From NCBI GenBank assembly GCA_021613535.1, contig CP075493.1:6820001-6884000 (forward strand): a stretch of DNA of 64,000 nt. Direction: 5' to 3'. Below, piece after piece: positions 1 to 17,138 of the stretch. The position numbers were made by a program, and so were the translations under genes. The stretch's first letter is position 1, and every line of letters begins with the position of its first letter. The notes beneath the pieces are model-generated. The model worked only from the letters and a program-made list of their open reading frames with translations, was not told the origin of the DNA and ran no database searches. The DNA comes from Adineta vaga (Eukaryota; Animalia; Rotifera).

Positions 1-1724
1 CTAGAGATTTGTGGTTGACGTCATTATATAATGGATGACGAGTTTTACAGCTTGATTTAGTAGCTGCTTGGATTTGACGTTTAATGTCTAATGGTAGAAA
101 TATGTTTTGTGTTCGTACATGTTCAAACATAAAAAAGAAAATTTTCAAGAAAAGAGTACATCTCAGTCTCAATTAACAAATGTGTTGAGACACAAAGTAG
201 GATATAAATCGCATCTGAATGCATTTCCCGATGTATTCGAGTTTCAATGAAATGCGGCGAGATGCATTTGTTAATACAAAGAGTGCTTCATGTTTATATG
301 GTAACTGGTACTTATATTCCATTCCTATTCTCTCATTGACATTCAGAGAATTACAAGAGTAGCAATGATTCGCGAGTGGTGAAGTAGTTCTATCTCGAGT
401 TCACACATATTTCTTTTCGAATACATTCATCATCGGTGTCGACGAACCCGACTGTACTAGATCTATTGAAATTTTTCTTGGTGTATACGTTCAATTAAAT
501 ACACATGATAATGAACATTTAGTTGTTGAATATACATCCATAATAATTTATTTGTCTATAATATGGTGATTTTGTTTACTTGAGAAATTGACGTTAACTG
601 CCTTTCTAAATCCATCAATTGTCATGTAGATTCTTTGAAAATATACCAGCAACGCATATATTATGACGTATTTTTCAATGAACCAGTGGCATATTGATCA
701 GTGACTTTTTGACTAGGAATATATTGATGGAGTATATAATTTTCGTATTTACATTTAATGGATATTTCCTTTCATATAATATTAGTATTTTAACAAATCA
801 TATTTAACATTAGTCGAAAAGAGATGGCATAATTAAGGATAAACTTCGTTTGAATTGATTTGATCAATTTTGATTGAAATGTTCTAAATATATTTGTAAA
901 AAATATCGAACTCATATAATATAGTCATCTATAACCTTTGAACAATTTCACAGCATCCATACAATGAGAATTCAAATGAGTTTTGGATCATAAACAAGAT
1001 AAAAATGAAGACATTTTCAAGAGTCATTAGAAAGATGATCTTATAAATTTTAAAATAATCGACTGTAAACGAATATAATCGATTGTCATACTTAGATAAA
1101 TAACTATTGAATCCATACAAAAAATTTAATACACCCTTTTTTTTAATTTTTTAATACTTGATGTTTCCAGATAAAAACTTTCTCTTCTATCAGAAAAATA
1201 TATATTTTGACCAAAATCATAGAGTATATGATTGTTCGTTCTTTTTTCAATGTTTTAAATTCTAATGAAAACAAATAACAATCTTGATGTCTTGTGTAGA
1301 AGAAGTTTTTCTTTTCTACTTTCACGGCAAAAGAGATAAAACTTCCATATTTAGACTTACGAAATGAGAACAAAATTAAAAATTAACGTTTCGTAATAAT
1401 CTCATCTACATTTCCACTCATTTTTTGTTATTTATAGACAAGCAGTAATTTATTAGAGCAACTCTATCTTCATTTAATTATCGTAAATGAAGTAGCTGTC
1501 TAATTCAACTTCGAGTATAAATAACGATGTTCAAAAAGCGCTCTTAGTCATTATTTTTTTATAGATATAATGATTTAGACTTTATTACTCATAAATAAAA
1601 TTTGTAAGAAGAGTCATATATGTGCAGAATTTTGAAGTATAATCGCATATAGATAAAAGAAAATCTATTTCTATTCCATGGAAAAAATCTAGCTCAAGTT
1701 CCGTGATTTATTTTCTAACTGATA

Positions 1725-2175
1725 TCAAATAGCTGAATGTGCATTTATATTCGAATTTGAATCCGGCAGCTGATGATAATATTGTTTCAACTGTTTTCGA
1801 GGAACACTGTAAGGTGCTCTCTGTTGGTCGGTCAGATCAACGCCTTTCATAGTGATATTGTAGTCGTGCACGCATACGAGTATTTCAGTTTGTTTATTTC
1901 TTTTATGAATAATCGTCACGTCATCATCGTGGTAGGTTGACAATATTTTAACATATTTCTTATCCGTTCATTTCAATGCCATTGATCTCTTTTAACAACG
2001 AACGATTCTCTGATTCCTTCTGTTTGACATGTTTGAAATCGAGATTGGAAGTAACTGAAAAAGGGCAAATGATTTATTATTTACGGAAAAAACATACTAC
2101 AGAAAGTATATTTTCTCATTTTTCTTATAAGAGTTTCTCTGACGCCTATAGGCGTCGATAACAGTTAAGGGTTAA
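1725..2175 (-). mobile_element. Decayed piggyBac transposon: transposase fragment plus one terminus
   Basis: Minus strand reads MALK*TDKKYVKILSTYH...VHDYNITMKGVDLTDQ...RKQLKQYY, matching the piggyBac W.DK..V..LST.H and DYN..MGGVD..DQ motifs, with the Trp replaced by a stop. The end reads AGGG+TTAA at 2168-2175, with the palindrome GACGCCTATAGGCGTC at 2141-2156. Confidence 0.8.
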
Positions 2176-3379
2176 TGAAATAATAGTAAGAACATCATCA
2201 AAACCAATTTATTAAAGAAAATTCTTCGTATATGCTTCTCACGTGTTGTGATTCGACAATAAATCAATCAACGAATTCTTATCAATGGTCATGTTGTTGC
2301 ATATAATGAAAGAACAAACGAACATAAATTTATGATTTCAAGAGTAATAGTACGAAAAAATCAATTCTTTTTAGAATTGTATACATTGATATTGTTGAAA
2401 CTAAAAATGCATGTTGTTTTTGTCCCAATGTTTCTATTAATATTCTATGCGACTGATAATAACTGATATGAACAGATTTCTCGATTACTCTTGAAAGTGG
2501 GGAGGGGGACTAAATTTTGGCAGAAAGTCTTCCTGTCAAGATCTACTAGTGTCAAGGGTATGCCATAATTTCCAATGGTAATATCTAAGAAGGTTCATTT
2601 GAAGAAAGACATAGATTACGAAATAGTAAAGATGAATCATGGAATTTCTGATGAACGCACTGTTGATTAGGAACTAACATAATCAGTATAAAATGACCAT
2701 AATACTGTATAGCTTCATATATTTGCACTATAATCAAAGGCTAGAAAATTGTCAAAAGCATACGGAAAATTTTGGGGGAAAGGGAGGCTAGGCCCCGCCA
2801 GCTTCCTCCTGATTAGAAACCATGTATATAAGGATAGAGATCACTGTACAAGAGAAAACAGTCGTAACAACAAAGAGACCTCTGTTTGATTCAAGACAAT
2901 TAACCATAAAAACAATTTTTTGCCGATGATTTATCTGATATTTTCCCAAATAAGATAAAACAATTATATGAAATTGTTTGATATCGAAAGCAGATTGTCA
3001 TTGATATTATTTTTAATACGTATGAATGGAGAATTCTGTTTTTGTTTTCAAATATATTTATTTATAGATTCAAGGCGCAAGTCAGAATATCTATTTCATT
3101 CAAAATATAAAAAAACCAAGGAGTAGCAGAAAAAGCAAAAGAATAGGAGACAATATAGAAAAACAAACAAACAAACAAACAATTATAATACATAAATCAA
3201 TCTCTAGGATAGTTTAAATGTGTTGAGACGAATCTAAAAAAACAAAAAAAAAAGAAATGAATTGTTTTTGTGTTCTTTGCACGCTTCATTCTTCTATTTA
3301 TCCAACAAATTATCACCTTTCATTCAAGAATGATCTCTCTTGAGACATAACACATACCTTTTTGTTGTTATTATTTTCT

Positions 3380-5698
3380 TCACGGTAATATCGGTGAATA
3401 CCAAAGATGTGGAGCACCGCCATACGCTGACATATTTTTCATATGATCTATACAGAAAGAAAAACATTTTGATTAAATTAATTTCTATATTATTGTTCTT
3501 CTACCTGGAGATAGATTTGGTTGAATAGCTGAGGGATAAGTTGAACAAGAACGATTATAGGGTGTGCTAAAAGGACTAAGTCCATCGTAACCACGTGTTG
3601 AAGCTAGAAAAAGAAAAAGAAATGATGGAAATTCCTTGAGGATATAAATAGCAATTAAGTCTTACTGGGTAAAAATGTTGGGTAACCACTTGAACTGCAT
3701 GCCACAGCAGCAGAAAAACCTGAACTAAATGTTCCATATTGATGATGATGATGATGATGGTGTGGATCATTTGGTATCGACGGATTATTCGATGGAAATA
3801 CTTGAGGATACAATGAAGTAGAAGACGATGATGGAATTTGTGGTGGAGTTGTACCTAAAGGTCGCATATTTTCACCCATATCATTCATTGCTTGTTGTGG
3901 ATGTTGTCGTCGACCTTTGACTTTATCTTCTCGTCGATATTTTGCTCGACGATTAGAAAACCATACCTAGATTTTCAAATAAATGATAATATATTCGATA
4001 TTGTTCAAAATCGAAATTATTTTACTTGTATTCGAGCTTCTGGTAAACTAATTTTAAGTGCAAGTTTTTCTCGTGCATATACATCTGGATAATGTGTACC
4101 ATTAAAAGCTAAATATGAATATATTTCATGATTAATTATATAAGAGACAAAACTACTCAAGATACCTTGTTCTAATGCATCAATTTGTTCTTGTGTAAAT
4201 GATGTTCGATTTCGTTGTAATTTTCTTTTTAATTTTAAACGTTCTTGTACAGCTTCTTCATTTTCATTTAAATCATCTCTCATACCAATTTTGCTATCAT
4301 TACTTTCATCAGATAAATCTACGAACAAAAAAAAAGAAAAGATATGTCTTTGATCGTCAAGGTGTGATGATGAACCTTATGGTCATAATCGAACGGAAGA
4401 CGTAAAAAGGCTAATATTCAATAAGATGCCGAAATGATGATAGATAAAATGATTTTTCATTTGACAACAATGAAGAAGAAAAGAGATTTCTTATTGTAGA
4501 GATAAGCGAAACATCTAATTAAATAAAAACATCATTTCCGTCTGTCCTACTGTGTATGTATTTGTCTTAATTAGTATATAGATAAAATACATTGATGTCA
4601 AAAAAAGTTGATCTGTAGAAAAAAAACATTCCTGCTGTTAGTGTTGTTGTTGTTCTTATTTTCATTTTCTTTTTCCGTACTACTTTAATCAGAACGAAGA
4701 AAAACGAACAGCTCCGCCTTGATGACCGTCTGATCATTTATTTTATTTATCAATCATTAAGAAAAGAAACAAAAGACTTAATGATCTTTTCTTCCGATAT
4801 AACTTAAGGGCATCAGCAGTTATTTCTAATTGTATTCAAACGAACCGATCAATATCATCAGGTGGTCAAACTTCTTCTCTCTACATCTGTGACTTCATCG
4901 TATTAAATCAAAGTTGAGTTAATATACCTGCTAAGTCTTGATGAGGAACATGATTAACATCGATTGTTTGATGTTTATATTCAGAATTTGAATCACCACT
5001 ATTCGAATAGACACTTGATGTAGGTGGATGACCATAAAATGATGATGATGATGGCCAAGGCTGACCATGTAAAACACGTAATTTATTATCAACTGAATAA
5101 TAAGTTTCATGATTAGTCATTGTATCTAATGACTTGGAACCAAGATTTCGAAGAACACGATTGATTGATGAAACCTAAAATTAATATTAAGAAATGATAT
5201 TGTCTTTGTTTTCTCTTGAAAAAAAATGACAATATAAAACTTACACTTGGAATATTTTCGGTATTGCAGACATTATCTACAAGGAGACGATCACGAATTT
5301 CCCACGCGAATATCGATGGTGTTTCGCGTTTATATTGAGCAATTCGTGTAACTACATCAGATGTAGCAACACGTGGCTTAGACCCTCCAATAGCACGTGG
5401 TTTAATTGAACCAGTTTCATAGTATCGTGCTAAGATTTTAGAAACACATCCATTCGATACTTGTAAAAATCGACTAATATCACAAGGGCGCATTCCATTG
5501 TGAGCAAGTTCAACAATTCGCGTTCTAGTAGTATCAGGTAATGGGCGACCATTGACGAATAAACCTCCAAGTTGGTTAACTCCTGAATGACCTGAAAAAT
5601 ATGAATTTGTAATTTTATGCATATTAATTCTGCAGACTTGCGGTGATCGATCACCGATTAATTTCTTATCAAAACAAAAATTTACCTTTATGCGACAT
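3380..5698 (-). CDS. Pax6: Pax6 paired-box + homeodomain transcription factor, 8 coding exons
   Basis: Spliced start MSHK|[10 protein letters not shown]; full paired domain with Q44/N47; linker [10 protein letters not shown]; homeodomain [13 protein letters not shown]...IQ|VWFSNRRAK (S50); PST-rich tail ending LWYSPILP*. Exons approx. 5698-5686, 5591-5245, 5174-4928, 4318-4166, 4108-4026, 3966-3666, 3603-3505, 3447-3380. Confidence 0.95.
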
Positions 5699-8166
5699 TG
5701 AGAGATCGTTATGAATATCCATTGATTAAGTGAACTAGAAGGAATAAAATATGAGATGATATTCAAACAAAAAAAAACCGAATGATTATACCTAGACATG
5801 ATATTAGAATTTTTCTTAGAAAAAAAATATTCTTAGAGGATTCGTTTTTTTTGAAAATATGAAAAAAGAAATAGGATTCTGTTCTTTTCTTCCTTCTCTC
5901 TCTCTTTTTTTTTGATTGAGAATATTAGTAACAACTTACAGTTCAGTGAGTTGGAACTTGTTTCGGATCACACACGCGCAGGCGGGCGGACAACGCTTGC
6001 ACGGATTCGGTTAGTTAGCCTCGTGTGAACGCTCGATTTGTGCGCTTACAACTGAAAGCATCGAGACAAAACACATAAACTAGAGAAAAATCGGGCAAGC
6101 GTATAACGACAAGAAAAAAAGAAATAGATCGGGGGAAGGATAAGAAATAGAGAGAGAGAGAGAGAGACGAGAGAAAATGGCATAAGAGAATCGACCAGCA
6201 GCAAATCCGATTGTTTGTCGGTCTTTTTTCTCTCTTTTTCTGCACTAATGAACAAATTTGTTCTCTTTTCTGACTGGCTACCTTCTTTCCCCTTCTCCAT
6301 ATTAAATGACACTCAAGCACTTTGTTGCAATCAAGTAGATGAAGAACGAAGAGAACAAATTAACTATTGGTTGACTGATTCCTTTTTCCTCGACACTCGT
6401 TTTCTGATTGGTTCGTTCGTTTTTTAGTTCATTATTATTTTACCTGAGATTTTTCTTCTTCGCTCTTTCCTCTGTCTGTTTCTTTCGATTCTTCCGTTTG
6501 AGATTGATGATGAATATCAAAATCGAGACTTTTTAACGACTATACTAGGAGGAAATCTATGCTTGATTACACACATAATAACAGACGGACATCGGACAGC
6601 AGTGACAATTCTCATTGAAACAAGGACAATCATTATCGTCTCATAATTTCTGCTTGAAAAAATCTTCCAAGATTATTAATGTGTCTTTTGCTTATTATTT
6701 TCGGACAAGAAAAACAAAATCTAACATCAGACGCCGAGAATTTTAATGCATAAAGAAAAAGAAATCCGCTTGTTATTTTTCCAATATACATTCTTTCATC
6801 AACTTAGATTTATATGTTTGTAAGCTGATGAAAAAAAAATAGTTTTAAAACAATAGACAAATCAGCAGGTGATACATAGAGAGAAGGCGATTTCATTTCC
6901 CTGGAAAATATGACGCCACAAACAAGTTTAGTTTGATGATCATAAATGAAATGATATGTAGTGATTCTATATCATCGATCAATCACAGCAGGTTGTAATA
7001 ATTATTTCCACTTGGTCTACGGATAATAATTAGCTTCATTTCCATCTGATTAACATCTCTTACATATATACAACTTGATGTTCTTTGTTCATTAACACCG
7101 ACAGACAAGTTTCGTGCTTAGATAGCAATGATCATTCTAGCGTGATGATATCCGTTTGGAAAACAATTTCCTTATGATAGAAAAGAAGAAGAAGAAGCAG
7201 AAATCGCAATTATTCGATCAGAGATAGAAAAAGAAAGAGAGAGAGAGAGACGAAATGAGGTGTTAATACAAAGTAATTTGCTCTGCTCTTGCTTGTCGCT
7301 GTCACCGTCAGTTATTCCGCTGAAATGATCAAAGTAAAATTAGCATAGCATTCCTTCAGGGTCTCGACATGTAAGCGTTATGCCTATCAATAGAATAATT
7401 GCAAAGAACTTATCATTATTAAGTGACGAAACTGAAAGAGAACAAAAAAGATAAAACATTACGGCGAAAGATTTTTAGATCTGATTGATTTTGTTAATGA
7501 AATGAAAAAAGAAAAACGTATTGAAATGTCATTCATTTTCTCGTCATCATGTGTTCAGTGAAACGGAGATGATCTGATCCGATTGATGACAATACAATTG
7601 GACGCATAATCAAAAAAAAAGAAAAAGAAAGTAAGACTAGTGGAAAACGAATTCAATTGATTATGATTCGACTAGGCAAGAAATAAGACGAGCGGAAAAA
7701 GACAATCATCGGCATTTCAATTTCTTTTTCTTCTACAATTGTCTTCAGGCTAGCGCCTTTAGCTTACCTTGTTTATTATTATTGACGAAATAGAATTTTT
7801 ATTCATTAATAAAATCAGATTATCCAGAAAAGAATATTTCTTCTTGATTGAAACATTCAATCAATTAATTTGATATTAATTTTCGTATATTGAATTACAA
7901 CGATTCAAGAATTCAATGTACCATTAAGACTTTATATGAACAATTATCGAACTACTAAATAAAACAAATTCATATTCTTTCACTCTTTTTCCTGTCTAAA
8001 TTATCTCATAGAGTGCACCTTTTACTTCGCTTGATTAACACTATTGACATCTTCTAAACATTTCATATAGAAATGCATTCTAACTATTTATTCAATCTAG
8101 ATAATATATGAGAAAATACAATGGAATAATCAAGCTGGAATAATTATATGATAAAAATATTGCATT

Positions 8167-8445
8167 TTAAAGTTTTAATTTTTCTGCATTAGCTTTGGCA
8201 TCTTTTTTTAGATTTTCAGCTGTCTGTTTCGCTTCATTGGACAATTCTTTGGCATGATGTTTTGTTTCGTCATGTAATTGTTCCAAATGTTTTGCTTCAA
8301 CTTTTTGTTCATGTTTAAGGTCAGCTGCAGCATTTTCAGCATCACAACGACGAATTGTATCTTGTTCAGCAAGATTATCAGCAATGCCTCGACGTTCTTC
8401 TTCAAGAACATGAGCATTATGATGTGAAATTGATTCTTTTGACAT
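8167..8445 (-). CDS. Small hydrophilic, group-3 LEA-like protein (92 aa)
   Basis: Intronless ORF rich in A/E/K/H with no F, W or Y; C-terminal 11-mer-like units TKHHAKELSNE/AKQTAENLKKD/AKANAEKLKL. Confidence 0.6.
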   Translation of the reverse strand: MSKESISHHNAHVLEEERRGIADNLAEQDTIRRCDAENAAADLKHEQKVEAKHLEQLHDETKHHAKELSNEAKQTAENLKKDAKANAEKLKL

Positions 8446-8567
8446 GAATTTTGGTAAAAAAAAAAACTATCTAGAAGAAGTAGTCGCTCGTTTTAATCAA
8501 CATAGAGATTTATTTCTGGATTTCTTTAATACATAATGACAAGAAGGAAAAACGAAAAAACAAATGA

Positions 8568-11731
<3,164 letters not shown>

Positions 11732-11953
11732 CGTTTGTTCTCTATCTGAATAAGATGAAAACAATTTATCATTCCATTTATTATTCTGTTGATATTTTTT
11801 TATCGAAAGCAACAAACAAGATTTTATTTTTTCGTTTTTTTTCTACTTCAATCACATTATTGTGGCTCAAGAGAATAGAATTCACGTTTGATTTTTTTCC
11901 GTATTTACAATAAGCACAAACACAGACACAAAAAAAATAAGAAGAAAAACAAT

Positions 11954-13346
11954 TCAAATTAGCAATGTAACAAATTGTGGTTGATTATGAATATCTTTTC
12001 GACACATTGGACATGAACGATTTTTTAACATCCATTCTCCAATACAGGATGAATGATATTCATGTGAACATGCCAATATACTAACTTCTTGACCACTACG
12101 ATAATTTTCCAGACAAATTGAACATTCTGAACCCGTTTCACCGTTGGATAATGTTGGAGATCGTGAAGGTGATAAACAAATAGTTACAGAAGATGATGTG
12201 TTGAATAATGTTTGAAATTTAACATCTAATTTTGGTTCTTGTTTAATAGAAATTGTCGATTTCGAAGGTTCATTAAGAATTCGTTGAATAGAATTTGCCT
12301 AAGAATGAAAATATAGAAATATTGTCTTTGTACAAAGAACATATATGAATCTATTTACATTTGGTAACGTTTGAGCCGTACATATACCATTTTGTAACAA
12401 ATTTTGTTGAATTTCCCAAACAAATATCGTAGGTTTACTTGATTTAAGTTTAAGAATTTCATTACGAATGTGAGCAGTTAAACGTGGACGTTTATTAACT
12501 TTGGACGGAATCGAACGTTTCGTTATTGGAATAGATGCTGTCGAAGGTTGCGGCAGTGGTGGCGGTGGTGGTAGCGAAAAATTCATTGGTGGTAAAAGAT
12601 TAAAATATGGCGGATACGGACTATTCGATGCCATTTGAGATACTCGCGAATTCACAGAAGTTTTATCATTGGAATTTGATATTGAATTATACGATGGATA
12701 TGAAGCTAGAATAGATATAGTTAACGATTAATTTTCAATTTTAAAATAATAATTTCATTAACATACATGATCCAGGATGATCTGGATATGATGTAGCACT
12801 GTGTGTACGTATTAAAGATGAATTATTATTCCATCCGAAAAATAGATCTGGTGATGGATGTGAATAATGAAATGGAATTGTTGACGATTGATTTGTTGTC
12901 GATGAATAAATTGATGTTGATGTTGGTAGAGTTGATTCAGCTAGACGGAAGAAAGAAAATAATATCATTTCAAAATATATATTTCTTTACTTACTATGAC
13001 GTCGATAAAAATTTGGATTTGTATTATTCAAATTAGGAATTATATCAAACGACGACGATGACGACGACGACGACGATGATGACGACAATGAATACGGCTT
13101 ATTTGTCGTTGATGTATTACCGGTTGAAAAAGAAACAGATTGTTGTGGAGAATATGTTGGATAGTTCGACTTTTCCCAAGGATACTGATGATGACGATAA
13201 TCATATGTAGTTGGATATGATCGATTACTTGCATAATTTGTATAATCTAAGAAACAATAGAGATAATATTGGATATAAAATTTTGATTTTTACTTACCGA
13301 TCGTCTGAGACATGGGTGAAACCGTATTTTCTGTGACTGTCATCAT
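11954..13346 (-). CDS. Chimeric protein: S/P/Y-rich N-terminus + paired-domain RED subdomain + C-terminal RING-H2 finger (~388 aa, 5 exons)
   Basis: Exons 13346-13298, 13246-12995, 12940-12767, 12705-12359 and 12298-11954 splice in frame (1167 nt). Contains KRPRLTAHIRNEILKLKSSKPTIFVWEIQQNLLQNGICTAQTLPN|ANSIQRILN and CSICLENY...LACSHEYHSSCIGEWMLKNRSCPMCR. Confidence 0.85.
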
Positions 13347-14425
13347 GATCTAAAATAGAAAGAAAGAAAGAAACAATAACGCCATGTTGAATCTATGTGT
13401 TCACTCATTGCAAACAAAAAGAAAAAAAGTAGGCCCACTTCGTCACGACAACTGTGTACGTATTGTGTATGTATACCTCCTTCTCTCTCTAGACGCTTGT
13501 TCGTTCTGAACGAACAAATGCGGGAGAAAGAGAGATGCTCGCCGTCTCGTCTTTCTCTTAATTATACAGTTTGTTCTTTCGTTCTGTCCTCCTTTTTTCT
13601 CCATTTCTCTCTCTCTTCCTCTTTCCTTCAATTTTTTTTTATTCACAAGGCAATGGAAAATGGAACTATGCTATCTTTTCTCATTTCTTTTTCTTTAATT
13701 ATACTCTTGTTATTTATGAAGGCGGTCGACATCCCATTGAAATCGCCCGTCGCAATATATGTATATATGTATATACATATAAATGCGCACGGACGCTCCT
13801 CGGCGTTTTTTCTCTTCTCTTTCGCTCTCGTGTCGGACTAGATAAGACAAATATATAAGATGCATGACCACTACTGTCAAGCTAGTTATAACTCGCAAAA
13901 ATGATAATTGATCACTCTCATCTGTAAGCTTCAATGGTTTACGTTCTTTCCCTGAGGTTAAAAATGTGAGCATCTGTCTATCTATCTCTCTAGCCTATTT
14001 CTTTTTACGCACGAATAATAAAAAGAAAAGAATGAAGAGAGGAAAAATGAATCTTTTGTACATTTGTCTATTACGTCTTTTTCCTCTTTTGATACACAAA
14101 AAAAACCGACTGAACAGATTGAACAGTAAATGACCTAACATTTTAGAGCGGATAGTTAATTCTCTCACAAAAGATTCTTGTCTTTGATACATACAAACAA
14201 ATGAGAAAGAGAGAAAAAAGTGTAAATAGAAAGACAAGACAAATACACACATGCACACACAGAGAAGAGAATCCATTTTTTTCTTGCTTAACATCGTAAA
14301 AATGTACATGAAGAGACATAATAGAAGATTTTACTGTTGCACACGCATACACACAAACACACAACGAAAGAAATCTACCTAAATCCATAAATGTGTGCAA
14401 TAAACTATACATATTGATATTTATA

Positions 14426-15792
14426 TCAGCAAGAAGAAGATAGAAAATTATCGCGACGACATATAGGACAGGATGAATTCATTGTAAACCAACGTGCAAT
14501 ACATTTCGAATGATATTCATGTTGACATGGAAGTACACGAATATGTTGTCCATTTTTGAAATGTGACATACAAATAACACAAGCTGTTTGTTTCGAAGAT
14601 AATGTCGAGGTTTTATAACGATAAGAAAAGAACTGTTGAACATCTACTTGATTTAAACGATTTGGATCAGATAATTTCTCCGCTAGATCTAATAATTGTT
14701 CATAATTTTCACGTTCACGATAGGAACGCCATGGTTGTGGTTGATGAATATGATGATAATGATGATGATGTAATTGTTCATCGGATGAACATGTTGATGT
14801 TGATTCACTCGATGAATCTGAATGTGCTGGAGATATATTTCCCGTTCGAATTATTGTTTGTTGTTTATTATCAAGTATAAAATTTGTTGTACGTAATGGA
14901 CTAGAACCATTCGATTGAGGTGATAATAAACGTAAATTTGTTTTCGATGATTTTGGTATTGTGCCTGAAAAAAAATAATAATAATGAAAATAAATTTTCT
15001 TGTTGATCAACAAGAATTTTGTTATTTACTTTTCTGATTCGATTTTATCAATGAATTACTATGAAAAATCGATGAATGATGATGATGATGATGTTCGGTT
15101 AGTAATGGTGAATAGTGATCGGACAAATTATGTTCATGATTGGGTGCACTATTTGTTCGATGATACGACATTGTTGTTGTGGCTAACTGTGGTAATGCTG
15201 GTAGAATATTATTGAATAGTAATGGAATTTCATTTGATGTTCGAAGATGATCCCAAGATGATGGAAGAAGATCTTGCTCCTGTTGATGTTGAAAGACCAA
15301 TGATCGACGTTTTAATGTTGCGTGCGGAGGTTGATTTTCTAATTCAATCTTATTTGAAGTTTCATATCGAGCTCGTTTATGAGTCTAAAAAACCGAATAG
15401 TTGTATGAAAAATGGAAAACGAATCATGATTCTCTTACATATTGGTCATATTCATGCAGAGAATGATGTGCTGTATAAGTGACTAAATCATCTTGTGCTG
15501 ATCGTTTTCGAGTTCCTCGTGTTGTTGTCATTGTTAGATTTCGATCATAAATAAAATCTTGACTATTTGTAGATATTGATTTTGATACAGATGATTCATT
15601 ATTTATGGAACAACGACGTCGTTTGTTTGATATAGTAGCAGATGTTATGAGATGATCGATGGAAATCGGAATAATTGGTTGATGATTTGAATTCATTTGT
15701 AATTGTTGTTGTTGTTGTTGTTCAACATAATGATCATCATGGTTTATTAAATGATATCGTCTTAGAGATGAATTCGTTTGTTTTTTATCCAT
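14426..15792 (-). CDS. RNF38/RNF44-like RING-H2 E3 ubiquitin ligase
   Basis: ENYEQLLDLAEKL motif followed by CVICMSHF...LPCQHEYHSKCIARW...SCPICRRD; low-complexity Q/H/S-rich N-terminal exons. Confidence 0.85.
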
Positions 15793-17138
15793 AATTTTTA
15801 TTTTTATTTAAAATATCATCATTCTAAAAAAACAGACGTAAAGAAATAAATTCAATCTATCAATGTACATATAAACACACACACATACAATGGACGCTCC
15901 TAACATTACTCGTTTGCAAACGCAAAGAGAAGAAGAAAAAAAAACTCAAGCGAAGAAGAGAACGAGTGTAGACTGATTCACGCGTACCCATATTGATTGT
16001 AGGCGAAAAAAAGCGAAGGAGAATATTGAGTGCGTACTCGCGTCGCTACAACACCGACATACATACATATATGTGTGCTTATGTGTATGAAGAAGAAAAA
16101 AAACGGCAAGAGAAAAAGATGAGGGTCAGCGCTAAGATGAGCGTTCTCGACGTTGTCGTCGTTTCTTTTTTTGTTCAATTGGAAAAAGTAGGTCATCTGA
16201 CTTGAACGAAGTCAAGGAGAATAAAATGATTATTTTCATCAAAAGAGAAATAAGAAATGAAAATAACTCATTCGTTGATTCTCATAGATTAAATACCATT
16301 GACTTCAATGACAAAAATTCTTATCTGTCGATGATGTAATACAGTTTGTATAGAACAAATGACGGAGACATTTACATTCAAATTGTGAGCGTAAAATGAA
16401 GACAAAAGATGATAGATATCTTTCATTCTTTCTTTTTCGATCAAATTAGTCGGTTTTAAAGAAAATTTCATTTGAATGTACAGCAATGTTAATGATCAAA
16501 AGGAATGTATCAGTTGTTAATTGCAAGGTTAGAAAATTTGATGGTAGTTGAAACAACACATATTTTGTAGAAATATGTCTCGCAATGATTATGATAGATT
16601 GATAAAAAAAACAATTTTTTTTTTCTCATTGAGTTACTGACAAATATTCTCAATTGCCTGAGAATTTCATCTTAAACAAATCTAGTAATCATATACGGAC
16701 ACCTATAAAATCAATGATTGTCTTCATATACAGAAATTGTATCTAGTTCTCATTTTTACTCGACATTCTAAACATGAGATATCTTCAAGTTATGAACACA
16801 AATGCACACTATATTTCTCACATAAAGATTAGATAAAATTTACCTTTCTATTGGTATGAACAGAAAATATTGAAAATAAATTTAATCTGAAACAGAAAAA
16901 GACATAGTGAATTGTTGTTTTATTTTCGCTAGCAGATCTTCGAATGATCGGAGAATTCAGTTGTTTGTTTTTTTTCATATAAGCTCAATCAATGAATTAT
17001 TCACAAAAGAAAAGAAAACCAAAATCCTAAAAAGAAAACCGAATGCAATTCAGAAGAATATTGATTGAATATTGTTTTCTTCTGTTTTTAATGAATCATC
17101 TGTCGACAAGACGAGAGATAAAATAAAAACAAACCGGA

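Follow-up and report, generated by a model that had tools for sequence, protein, structure and literature searches.

Pax genes are the textbook case of modular evolution, in which the PAI and RED subdomains of the paired box, the octapeptide and the homeodomain have been gained and lost. To our knowledge, every known Pax gene product is a transcription factor. The structure of Pax6 shows DNA contacts by both the linker and the RED half; nematodes have Pax proteins without PAI, and the PAI of the Eyegone family is truncated (PMC4901127). The gene described here lies on the minus strand of a 64-kb stretch of the bdelloid rotifer Adineta vaga (C1:6820001-6884000 of an assembly of 100.8 Mb in six contigs). 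This whole stretch is called the window, and all coordinates without a contig name refer to it. The gene joins a RED subdomain to a RING-H2 finger, the zinc finger of many ubiquitin ligases (E3), and is called the RED-RING gene. With moderate confidence, the whole is best explained as a bdelloid-specific gene of shuffled origin, encoding a nuclear RING-H2 ligase tethered by RED.

The resemblance to Pax proteins is confined to one part of the product. With the RED of Pax6/Eyeless (6PAX) it shares a three-helix fold, 30-34% identity and a phase-0 intron between helices 2 and 3. Common motifs are K-(R)P-R, P-x-I-F-x-W-E-I, L-L, G-x-C-T and S-I-x-R-x-L. Unlike Pax proteins, the RED-RING gene has no complete paired domain, no homeodomain and no octapeptide; its recognition helix is altered, and a RING-H2 finger stands in place of the homeodomain and transactivation region. 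The PAI-less or truncated Pax proteins (Eyegone family, nematode Pax) differ as well, since they retain the homeodomain, act as transcription factors and carry no ubiquitin-ligase domain.

The RING-H2 ligases RNF38/RNF44, RLIM, Arkadia (RNF111) and RNF165 are the closest systems on the other side. In these ligases, too, a long disordered region precedes a RING-H2 finger at the very C-terminus, and the ligand spacing is the same. RING ligases contact the ubiquitin-conjugating enzyme (E2) through an isoleucine, a tryptophan, a proline and an arginine behind the last cysteine. The RED-RING product has all four: the Ile behind the first Cys, the Trp of GEW, the Pro of CPMC and the Arg behind the last Cys. 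In contrast to RNF38/RNF44, it lacks the conserved block preceding the RING, which the RNF38 crystal constructs contain (YEQLLDLAEKL in the RNF38-like gene upstream of it in the window), and its match to RNF38 covers the RING only and is not the best one. A VTICLSPS motif, a QPQFVTLLI tail and the Pax RED are its own. MSL2 (CXC), UHRF1 (SRA) and RAG1 are E3 ligases that combine a RING with a DNA-recognition module in one polypeptide. Their DNA-binding folds are unrelated and include no paired-box subdomain. We know of no E3 ligase that uses half of a paired box as its DNA-binding module. Lacking PAI, the RED-RING protein does not strictly qualify as a Pax protein, and lacking the block ahead of the RING, it is not an RNF38/44 orthologue. 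By its domain content, it belongs to the RING-H2 proteins and bears a RED subdomain derived from Pax.

The RED-RING gene spans 13346..11954 and consists of five exons (13346-13298, 13246-12995, 12940-12767, 12705-12359, 12298-11954). They add up to 1167 nucleotides (nt), or 388 codons and a stop. All four introns are of the GT-AG type and measure 51, 54, 61 and 60 nt. The 3' end of exon 4 encodes KRPRLTAHIRNEILKLKSSKPTIFVWEIQQNLLQNGICTAQTLPN, ends on a codon boundary and is followed by GTAAAT. Exon 5 is preceded by TTAG, opens with ANSIQRILNE and continues for 114 open codons through CSICLENYRSGQEVSILACSHEYHSSCIGEWMLKNRSCPMC to QPQFVTLLI and the stop. The orthologues begin with MMTVTEN. A list of open reading frames contained just 40 amino acids of the RING exon, because the list begins at the first start codon. 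An initial annotation, made from the sequence alone, had proposed the fusion of RED and RING exons; its peptides, its junction 12359/12298 and its length of 388 residues were all read back from the sequence. The features are given below, together with the joints found in the sequencing runs X1, X5 and X6.

13298..13346, minus strand: exon 1; ATG at 13346-13344; encodes MMTVTENTVSPMSQTI; joint 13246/13298 in contigs of X1 and X6.
12995..13246, minus strand: exon 2; low-complexity, with conserved DYRHH..WEK and NFYRRH; joint 12940/12995 in X1, X5 and X6.
12767..12940, minus strand: exon 3; conserved TESTLPTS and LFFGWNN..SL.RTHSA (invariant columns in alignment A1); joint 12705/12767 in X1, X5 and X6.
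12359..12705, minus strand: exon 4; rich in proline and serine at first, followed by the basic KRPR cluster and RED helices 1 and 2.
12359..12490, minus strand: first part of the RED subdomain, KRPRLTAHIRNEILKLKSSKPTIFVWEIQQNLLQNGICTAQTLPN; positions 72-115 of Pfam PAX.
12299..12358, minus strand: intron between the RED and RING exons; phase 0, 60 nt; its position in the paired box is shared by the Pax6-like intron (IPS/VSS).
12269..12298, minus strand: third (recognition) helix of RED, ANSIQRILNE.
11954..12298, minus strand: coding part of exon 5; stop at 11956-11954; RNA contigs over 11996-12297 and one over 11948-12025.
12164..12187, minus strand: VTICLSPS motif ahead of the RING; T, I, L and S fully or almost fully invariant across alignments A1 and A2.
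11999..12127, minus strand: RING-H2 finger, C-x2-C-x14-C-x-H-x2-H-x2-C-x10-C-x2-C; zf-RING_2.
11957..11995, minus strand: C-terminal tail, DIHNQPQFVTLLI, identical in all Adineta and Rotaria sequences of A1; DITDQSEFITILI in Didymodactylos.

The fused transcript exists. Contigs of four runs (X1, X5, X6, X16) were placed on positions 11000-15900; X1, X5 and X6 stem from three studies with two organism labels (A and B). Such assembled contigs reveal presence and splicing, not levels, ends or strand. The contigs of X1, X5 and X6 hold all four joints, namely 12297/12358 (cut +1), 12705/12767, 12940/12995 and 13246/13298, and the joint between RED and RING (12297/12358) occurs in each of the three runs. 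The ends of the skipped segments are CT..AC, corresponding to GT..AG when read on the minus strand. A single X6 contig, 1110 nt long, extends from exon 1 to 11996, beyond the last RING cysteine. The intergenic region 13460-13951 had zero coverage in X1, X5 and X6. In contrast, X16 covered this region at full depth, contained none of the four joints, and included a contig (12136-12614) that passes unspliced through the intron between RED and RING. Because of these contrasting patterns, X1, X5 and X6 can be regarded as RNA runs, and X16 as a DNA run. The RED-RING junction is present in mRNA, as the initial annotation had predicted for 12359/12298: spliced contigs from three studies contain it, and the DNA run X16 does not. 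The upstream RING gene and the downstream gene were found on contigs separate from that of the RED-RING gene.

The RED assignment was obtained from Pfam scans of each exon peptide separately, with hits listed up to an E-value of 10. Residues 72-114 of the exon 4 peptide match positions 72-115 of the 125 positions of Pfam PAX (PF00292) with an E-value of 7.9e-7 and 29.5 bits (curated cut-off 22). No other family matched exon 4, even at E 10, and exons 2 and 3 had no Pfam match. In correctly spliced orthologues, the PAX match spans the exon junction (profile positions 66/72 to 124/125; E 1e-8 to 4e-12), so that exon 5 opens with the third RED helix. The PAI half (PAX profile 1-65) was not matched by Pfam in any exon or any orthologue, and a homeodomain was likewise not found in any of them. 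A BLASTP comparison with the Pax6-like open reading frame of the window gave 34% identity over 44 residues (E 6e-8). Searched against all PDB sequences, the RED of the A. ricciae orthologue retrieved paired domains only, 6PAX at 3.3e-8, followed by 1PDN, 2K27 and 1K78.

Within the third helix, the I, R and L of I-x-R-x-L are invariant in all 20 family sequences. The helix reads NSIQRILNE in the RED-RING gene versus SSINRVLRN in Pax6; therefore, a common target set is not implied. The net charge of RED is +5 to +7 in every one of the 20 members, compared with +2 for the Pax6 RED. A basic cluster of the nuclear type (KVNKRPR) precedes RED, and its KRPR matches the end of the Pax linker (profile position 72 onward).

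An AlphaFold model of the A. ricciae orthologue (P0036, which in tblastn covers the window gene with residues 1 to 370) was built from the 20-sequence family alignment. It is disordered almost throughout except for residues 211-268, which form three helices (218-230, 236-245, 257-265) with a predicted local distance difference test score (pLDDT) of about 90. In a Foldseek search of the PDB, the top five chains were all paired domains before the E-value jumped from 7.5e-3 to 0.2; the isolated Pax5 RED chain superposed with a template modelling score of 0.84 and a root-mean-square deviation of 1.7 Å. In VIA-align, a long series of generic three-helix domains was headed by the Tc3 transposase at Z 6.4 with 12% identity and by Pax8 at Z 6.2 with 32% identity; Z values of 5-6 are common in this method, which cannot by itself separate Pax from other three-helix folds of the helix-turn-helix type. 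The identity of RED is settled by its sequence, the fold alone being insufficient. The reading of segment 12270-12500 as a Pax RED, proposed earlier without PAI and homeodomain, thus agrees with the PAX profile match above cut-off, with the paired-domain fold matches and with the absence of both other domains from the Pfam matches of the gene and its orthologues.

The RING-H2 finger occupies residues 58-100 of the exon 5 peptide and belongs to zf-RING_2 (PF13639, E 1.8e-14). With its canonical C3H2C3 spacing it is the complete finger which the initial annotation had placed in the final exon. Its eight metal ligands are invariant in 20 of 20 sequences. Among PDB sequences, the RINGs of ZNRF3, Arkadia, RLIM, RNF38 and RNF165 matched at 1e-12 to 1e-14. 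The VTICLSPS motif has no match to a Pfam family; with the serines and acidic residues that follow, it faintly resembles SUMO-interaction motifs, which is a guess.

A second copy is located on the ohnologous chromosome (C4:6120671-6122925). Its product (P0028, I4U23_018948) is annotated as 'hypothetical protein'. In this copy the RED exon ends likewise (TLPN followed by GTAAAT), a phase-0 intron of 57 nt lies at the corresponding position, and the RING and tail are shared. A phmmer search with exon 4 against 1.84 billion representatives yielded 27 matches, of which 25 were family members and two ordinary Pax proteins. Further searches used a full-length orthologue and a 12-sequence profile as queries. 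Proteins with both PF00292 and PF13639 occur in Adineta (A. vaga, A. ricciae with two copies, A. steineri with two copies), in Rotaria (R. sordida, R. socialis, R. sp. Silwood1 with two copies, R. sp. Silwood2) and in Didymodactylos carnosus (two copies of 547 and 529 residues), as well as among metagenome and transcriptome entries. All two-domain database entries are titled 'unnamed protein product' or 'RING-type domain-containing protein', and their PAX and RING calls are automatic. In the profile search, the last family member scored 147 bits, compared with 60 bits for RING-only proteins from fungi, mites and plants. The search returned no non-bdelloid protein with both domains, within the limits of the word-sharing step and the length window of the tool. 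Among the database matches, the architecture is confined to bdelloids, an asexual lineage tolerant of desiccation and radiation, and is not widespread; monogononts likely lack it. In the tree, an 'a' clade mixes Adineta and Rotaria and includes the orthologues of the window gene (P0036, P0035). The 'b' sequences of both genera stand apart from it, and Didymodactylos is placed outside. Because the 'a' clade holds both genera and 'b' is separate, the two copies predate the split of Adineta and Rotaria. At least eight bdelloid species, and both ohnologous copies, retain the structure of the gene with intact reading frames.

The copies on C1 and C4 were compared per exon by the method of Nei and Gojobori, which gave the following nonsynonymous (dN) and synonymous (dS) divergences.

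RED: dN 0.16, dS 0.58, dN/dS 0.28.
RING: dN 0.07, dS 0.58, dN/dS 0.12.
Proline-rich start of exon 4: dN 0.52, dS 1.07, dN/dS 0.48.
Linker: dN 0.45, dS 0.78, dN/dS 0.58.

Between the window and a transcript of organism B, six of six differences are synonymous. The invariant columns of the 20-sequence alignment concentrate in RED (R, T, E-I, P, F, W-E-I-Q-Q, L, C, Q, P, I-x-R-x-L), the RING and the tail. Both RED and RING are under purifying selection, their dN/dS ratios comparing with 0.48-0.58 in the low-complexity parts.

The origin of the gene may be sought in its two neighbours.

14098..15793, minus strand: RNF38-like RING-H2 gene, upstream neighbour; candidate donor of the RING exon, with its own separate spliced transcript.
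3400..5800, minus strand: Pax6-like gene, downstream neighbour; has a homeobox and a complete paired box; candidate source of the RED exons.

The order RNF38-like gene, RED-RING gene and Pax6 is collinear on C1, on C4 and on a contig from ENA (ERZ26165376, L011). The latter is 3.29 Mb long, much more GC-rich, and presumably derived from another bdelloid; it carries the three-gene block with its RED-RING gene. The phase-0 intron LPN/ANSIQR is homologous to IPS/VSSINR of the Pax6-like genes on C1, C4 and L011. The human PAX6 gene presumably has an exon boundary at the same point, after codon 119. Among 10 Pax-like RED loci (five pairs or singletons), the PS/VSS intron is common to the Pax6 pair and the L004/L005 pair only; of the other A. 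vaga Pax paralogues, three carry an intron behind SINR, and two lack one in this part. This position within the paired box points to a descent of RED from a Pax gene. The upstream neighbour has RNF38 as its best PDB match (E 4e-21, residues 61-127), and its RING is 46% identical to that of the chimera. In a search of the whole genome (at least 101 candidates), the chimera's RING retrieved itself and its ohnologue and then two adjacent RNF38-like genes. Orthologues aligned to the window by tblastn had no significant match besides the RED-RING gene and the neighbouring RING. These data are consistent with a local birth of the gene from both neighbours, through exon shuffling or partial tandem duplication, before the bdelloid genome duplication. 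The RED exons, with their intron of the Pax6 type, would have come from the flanking Pax6-type gene and the RING exon from the flanking RNF38-like gene.

The two Pax-like loci with the same intron, L004 (C2:3565753-3565851) and L005 (C5:13878770-13878895), have a RED exon that begins at the first RED helix, and their RED is 38-45% identical to that of the chimera. They are possibly the Eyegone-like, PAI-reduced Pax genes of A. vaga.

The predicted protein begins with about 210 disordered residues with short conserved motifs, followed by KRPR, the three-helix RED, a variable linker, and the C-terminal RING-H2 with its invariant tail. It may act as a nuclear E3 ligase anchored on DNA or chromatin. 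The basic helix-turn-helix of RED would bring the protein to DNA or chromatin, the RING-H2 would recruit a charged E2, and ubiquitin could be transferred to the protein itself, to nearby transcription factors or to chromatin proteins. A more specific form of this proposal is tentative. It holds that the ligase is tethered to DNA in a sequence-specific manner, that it arose from a Pax6-type RED and the neighbouring RNF38-like RING as the first Pax recognition module in an enzyme, and that two copies have existed since before the bdelloid genome duplication. Several observations weigh against the proposed function and origin. A RED without PAI binds DNA in proteins that also have a homeodomain, and the RED-RING protein has none. 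Three basic residues of the Pax6 RED (R100, R102 and R125 in 6PAX numbering) are replaced by Q, N and N. The RING was poorly modelled in P0036 (pLDDT 40-54). The lead of the neighbouring RINGs in the genome search is modest (56.7 and 51.8 bits, next 47.5 bits). Finally, RED is 34% identical to the neighbouring Pax6 and 35-45% to other Pax paralogues of the genome; its parentage is argued from intron position and synteny only, because the sequence does not single out Pax6.

The main rival is a RED that has turned from DNA to protein. It would no longer bind DNA and would recruit substrates as the protein-binding module of an ordinary RING-H2 ligase. Neither PAI nor a homeodomain is there to assist DNA binding, RED departs from Pax6 in the recognition helix and at several basic positions, and a mostly disordered chain with conserved short motifs is typical of adaptor or substrate-binding E3 ligases. 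However, the RED core with I-x-R-x-L is kept in all 20 sequences, the net charge exceeds that of the Pax6 RED, and the KRPR cluster matching the end of the Pax linker has been retained, and this rival appears rather unlikely. Improbable to a further degree is a dominant modulator of Pax6, which would compete for RED half-sites or ubiquitinate Pax6, the adjacency of the genes reflecting co-regulation. It would account for a Pax6 linkage conserved on three loci and for a RED of the Pax6 type by intron position. Birth in place explains the linkage equally well, though, the transcripts are separate, and RED has just 34% identity to that of the neighbouring Pax6, with a different recognition helix. 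A nuclear ligase tethered by RED is preferred over both.

Two further alternatives concern the origin of the gene and its reality. Tc1/mariner-type transposases possess a bipartite DNA-binding domain with a paired fold, and the second helix-turn-helix of Tc3 was the best VIA-align match of RED, tied with Pax8. A transposase as the source is nevertheless very improbable: PAX was the sole Pfam match and above its cut-off, no helix-turn-helix family of transposases appeared even at E 10, and the PDB sequence matches were exclusively Pax proteins. Identity is 12% to Tc3 versus 30-33% to Pax, with which RED also shares the P-x-I-F-x-W-E-I motif and the intron position of the Pax6 type. Hardly credible is an artefact or a decaying gene, i.e. 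a misjoined model or a pseudogene from a partial duplication. The full-length A. vaga C1 protein was indeed not among the database matches, yet spliced RNA contigs came from three studies, frames are intact in two ohnologues and at least eight species, dN/dS is below 0.3 in both domains, and the six differences to organism B are all silent.

The literature was searched in full text, and no description of a Pax-RING fusion was found, in line with the initial annotation. The sequences are already public without names; new are the recognition of the architecture, the transcript support, the age and the likely birth from neighbours. With half of a paired box in a putative ubiquitin ligase and both likely parents still flanking it, the gene is an unusually clear animal example of birth by exon shuffling. 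Should RED still recognise DNA, the protein would represent an E3 ligase naturally addressed to DNA, and a simple system for studying what a stand-alone RED is capable of.

Some observations were made on the adjacent genes. Upstream of the Pax6-like gene, a non-coding block of about 170 nt (window 5960-6130, minus strand; L013:5646-5910; L011:10120-10290) is nearly identical between the two A. vaga ohnologues and L011, far better conserved than the surrounding coding exons. In both A. vaga copies, a donor-like ACTGAACT followed by GTAAGT lies about 30 nt downstream. The block is likely a 5' untranslated exon of Pax6 or a regulatory element. The transcript of the RNF38-like gene has a joint at 15384/15439. 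Its region 14770-15076 draws many unrelated contig ends, probably due to repeats of His and Gln codons common to other genes. Directly downstream of the RED-RING gene, a separate spliced gene occupies about 11005-11815 on the minus strand; its counterpart was not found in the collinear C4 block. Its joints are 11065/11125, 11204/11266, 11431 or 11434/11497, and 11606/11668, one acceptor being shifted by 3 nt between organisms A and B.

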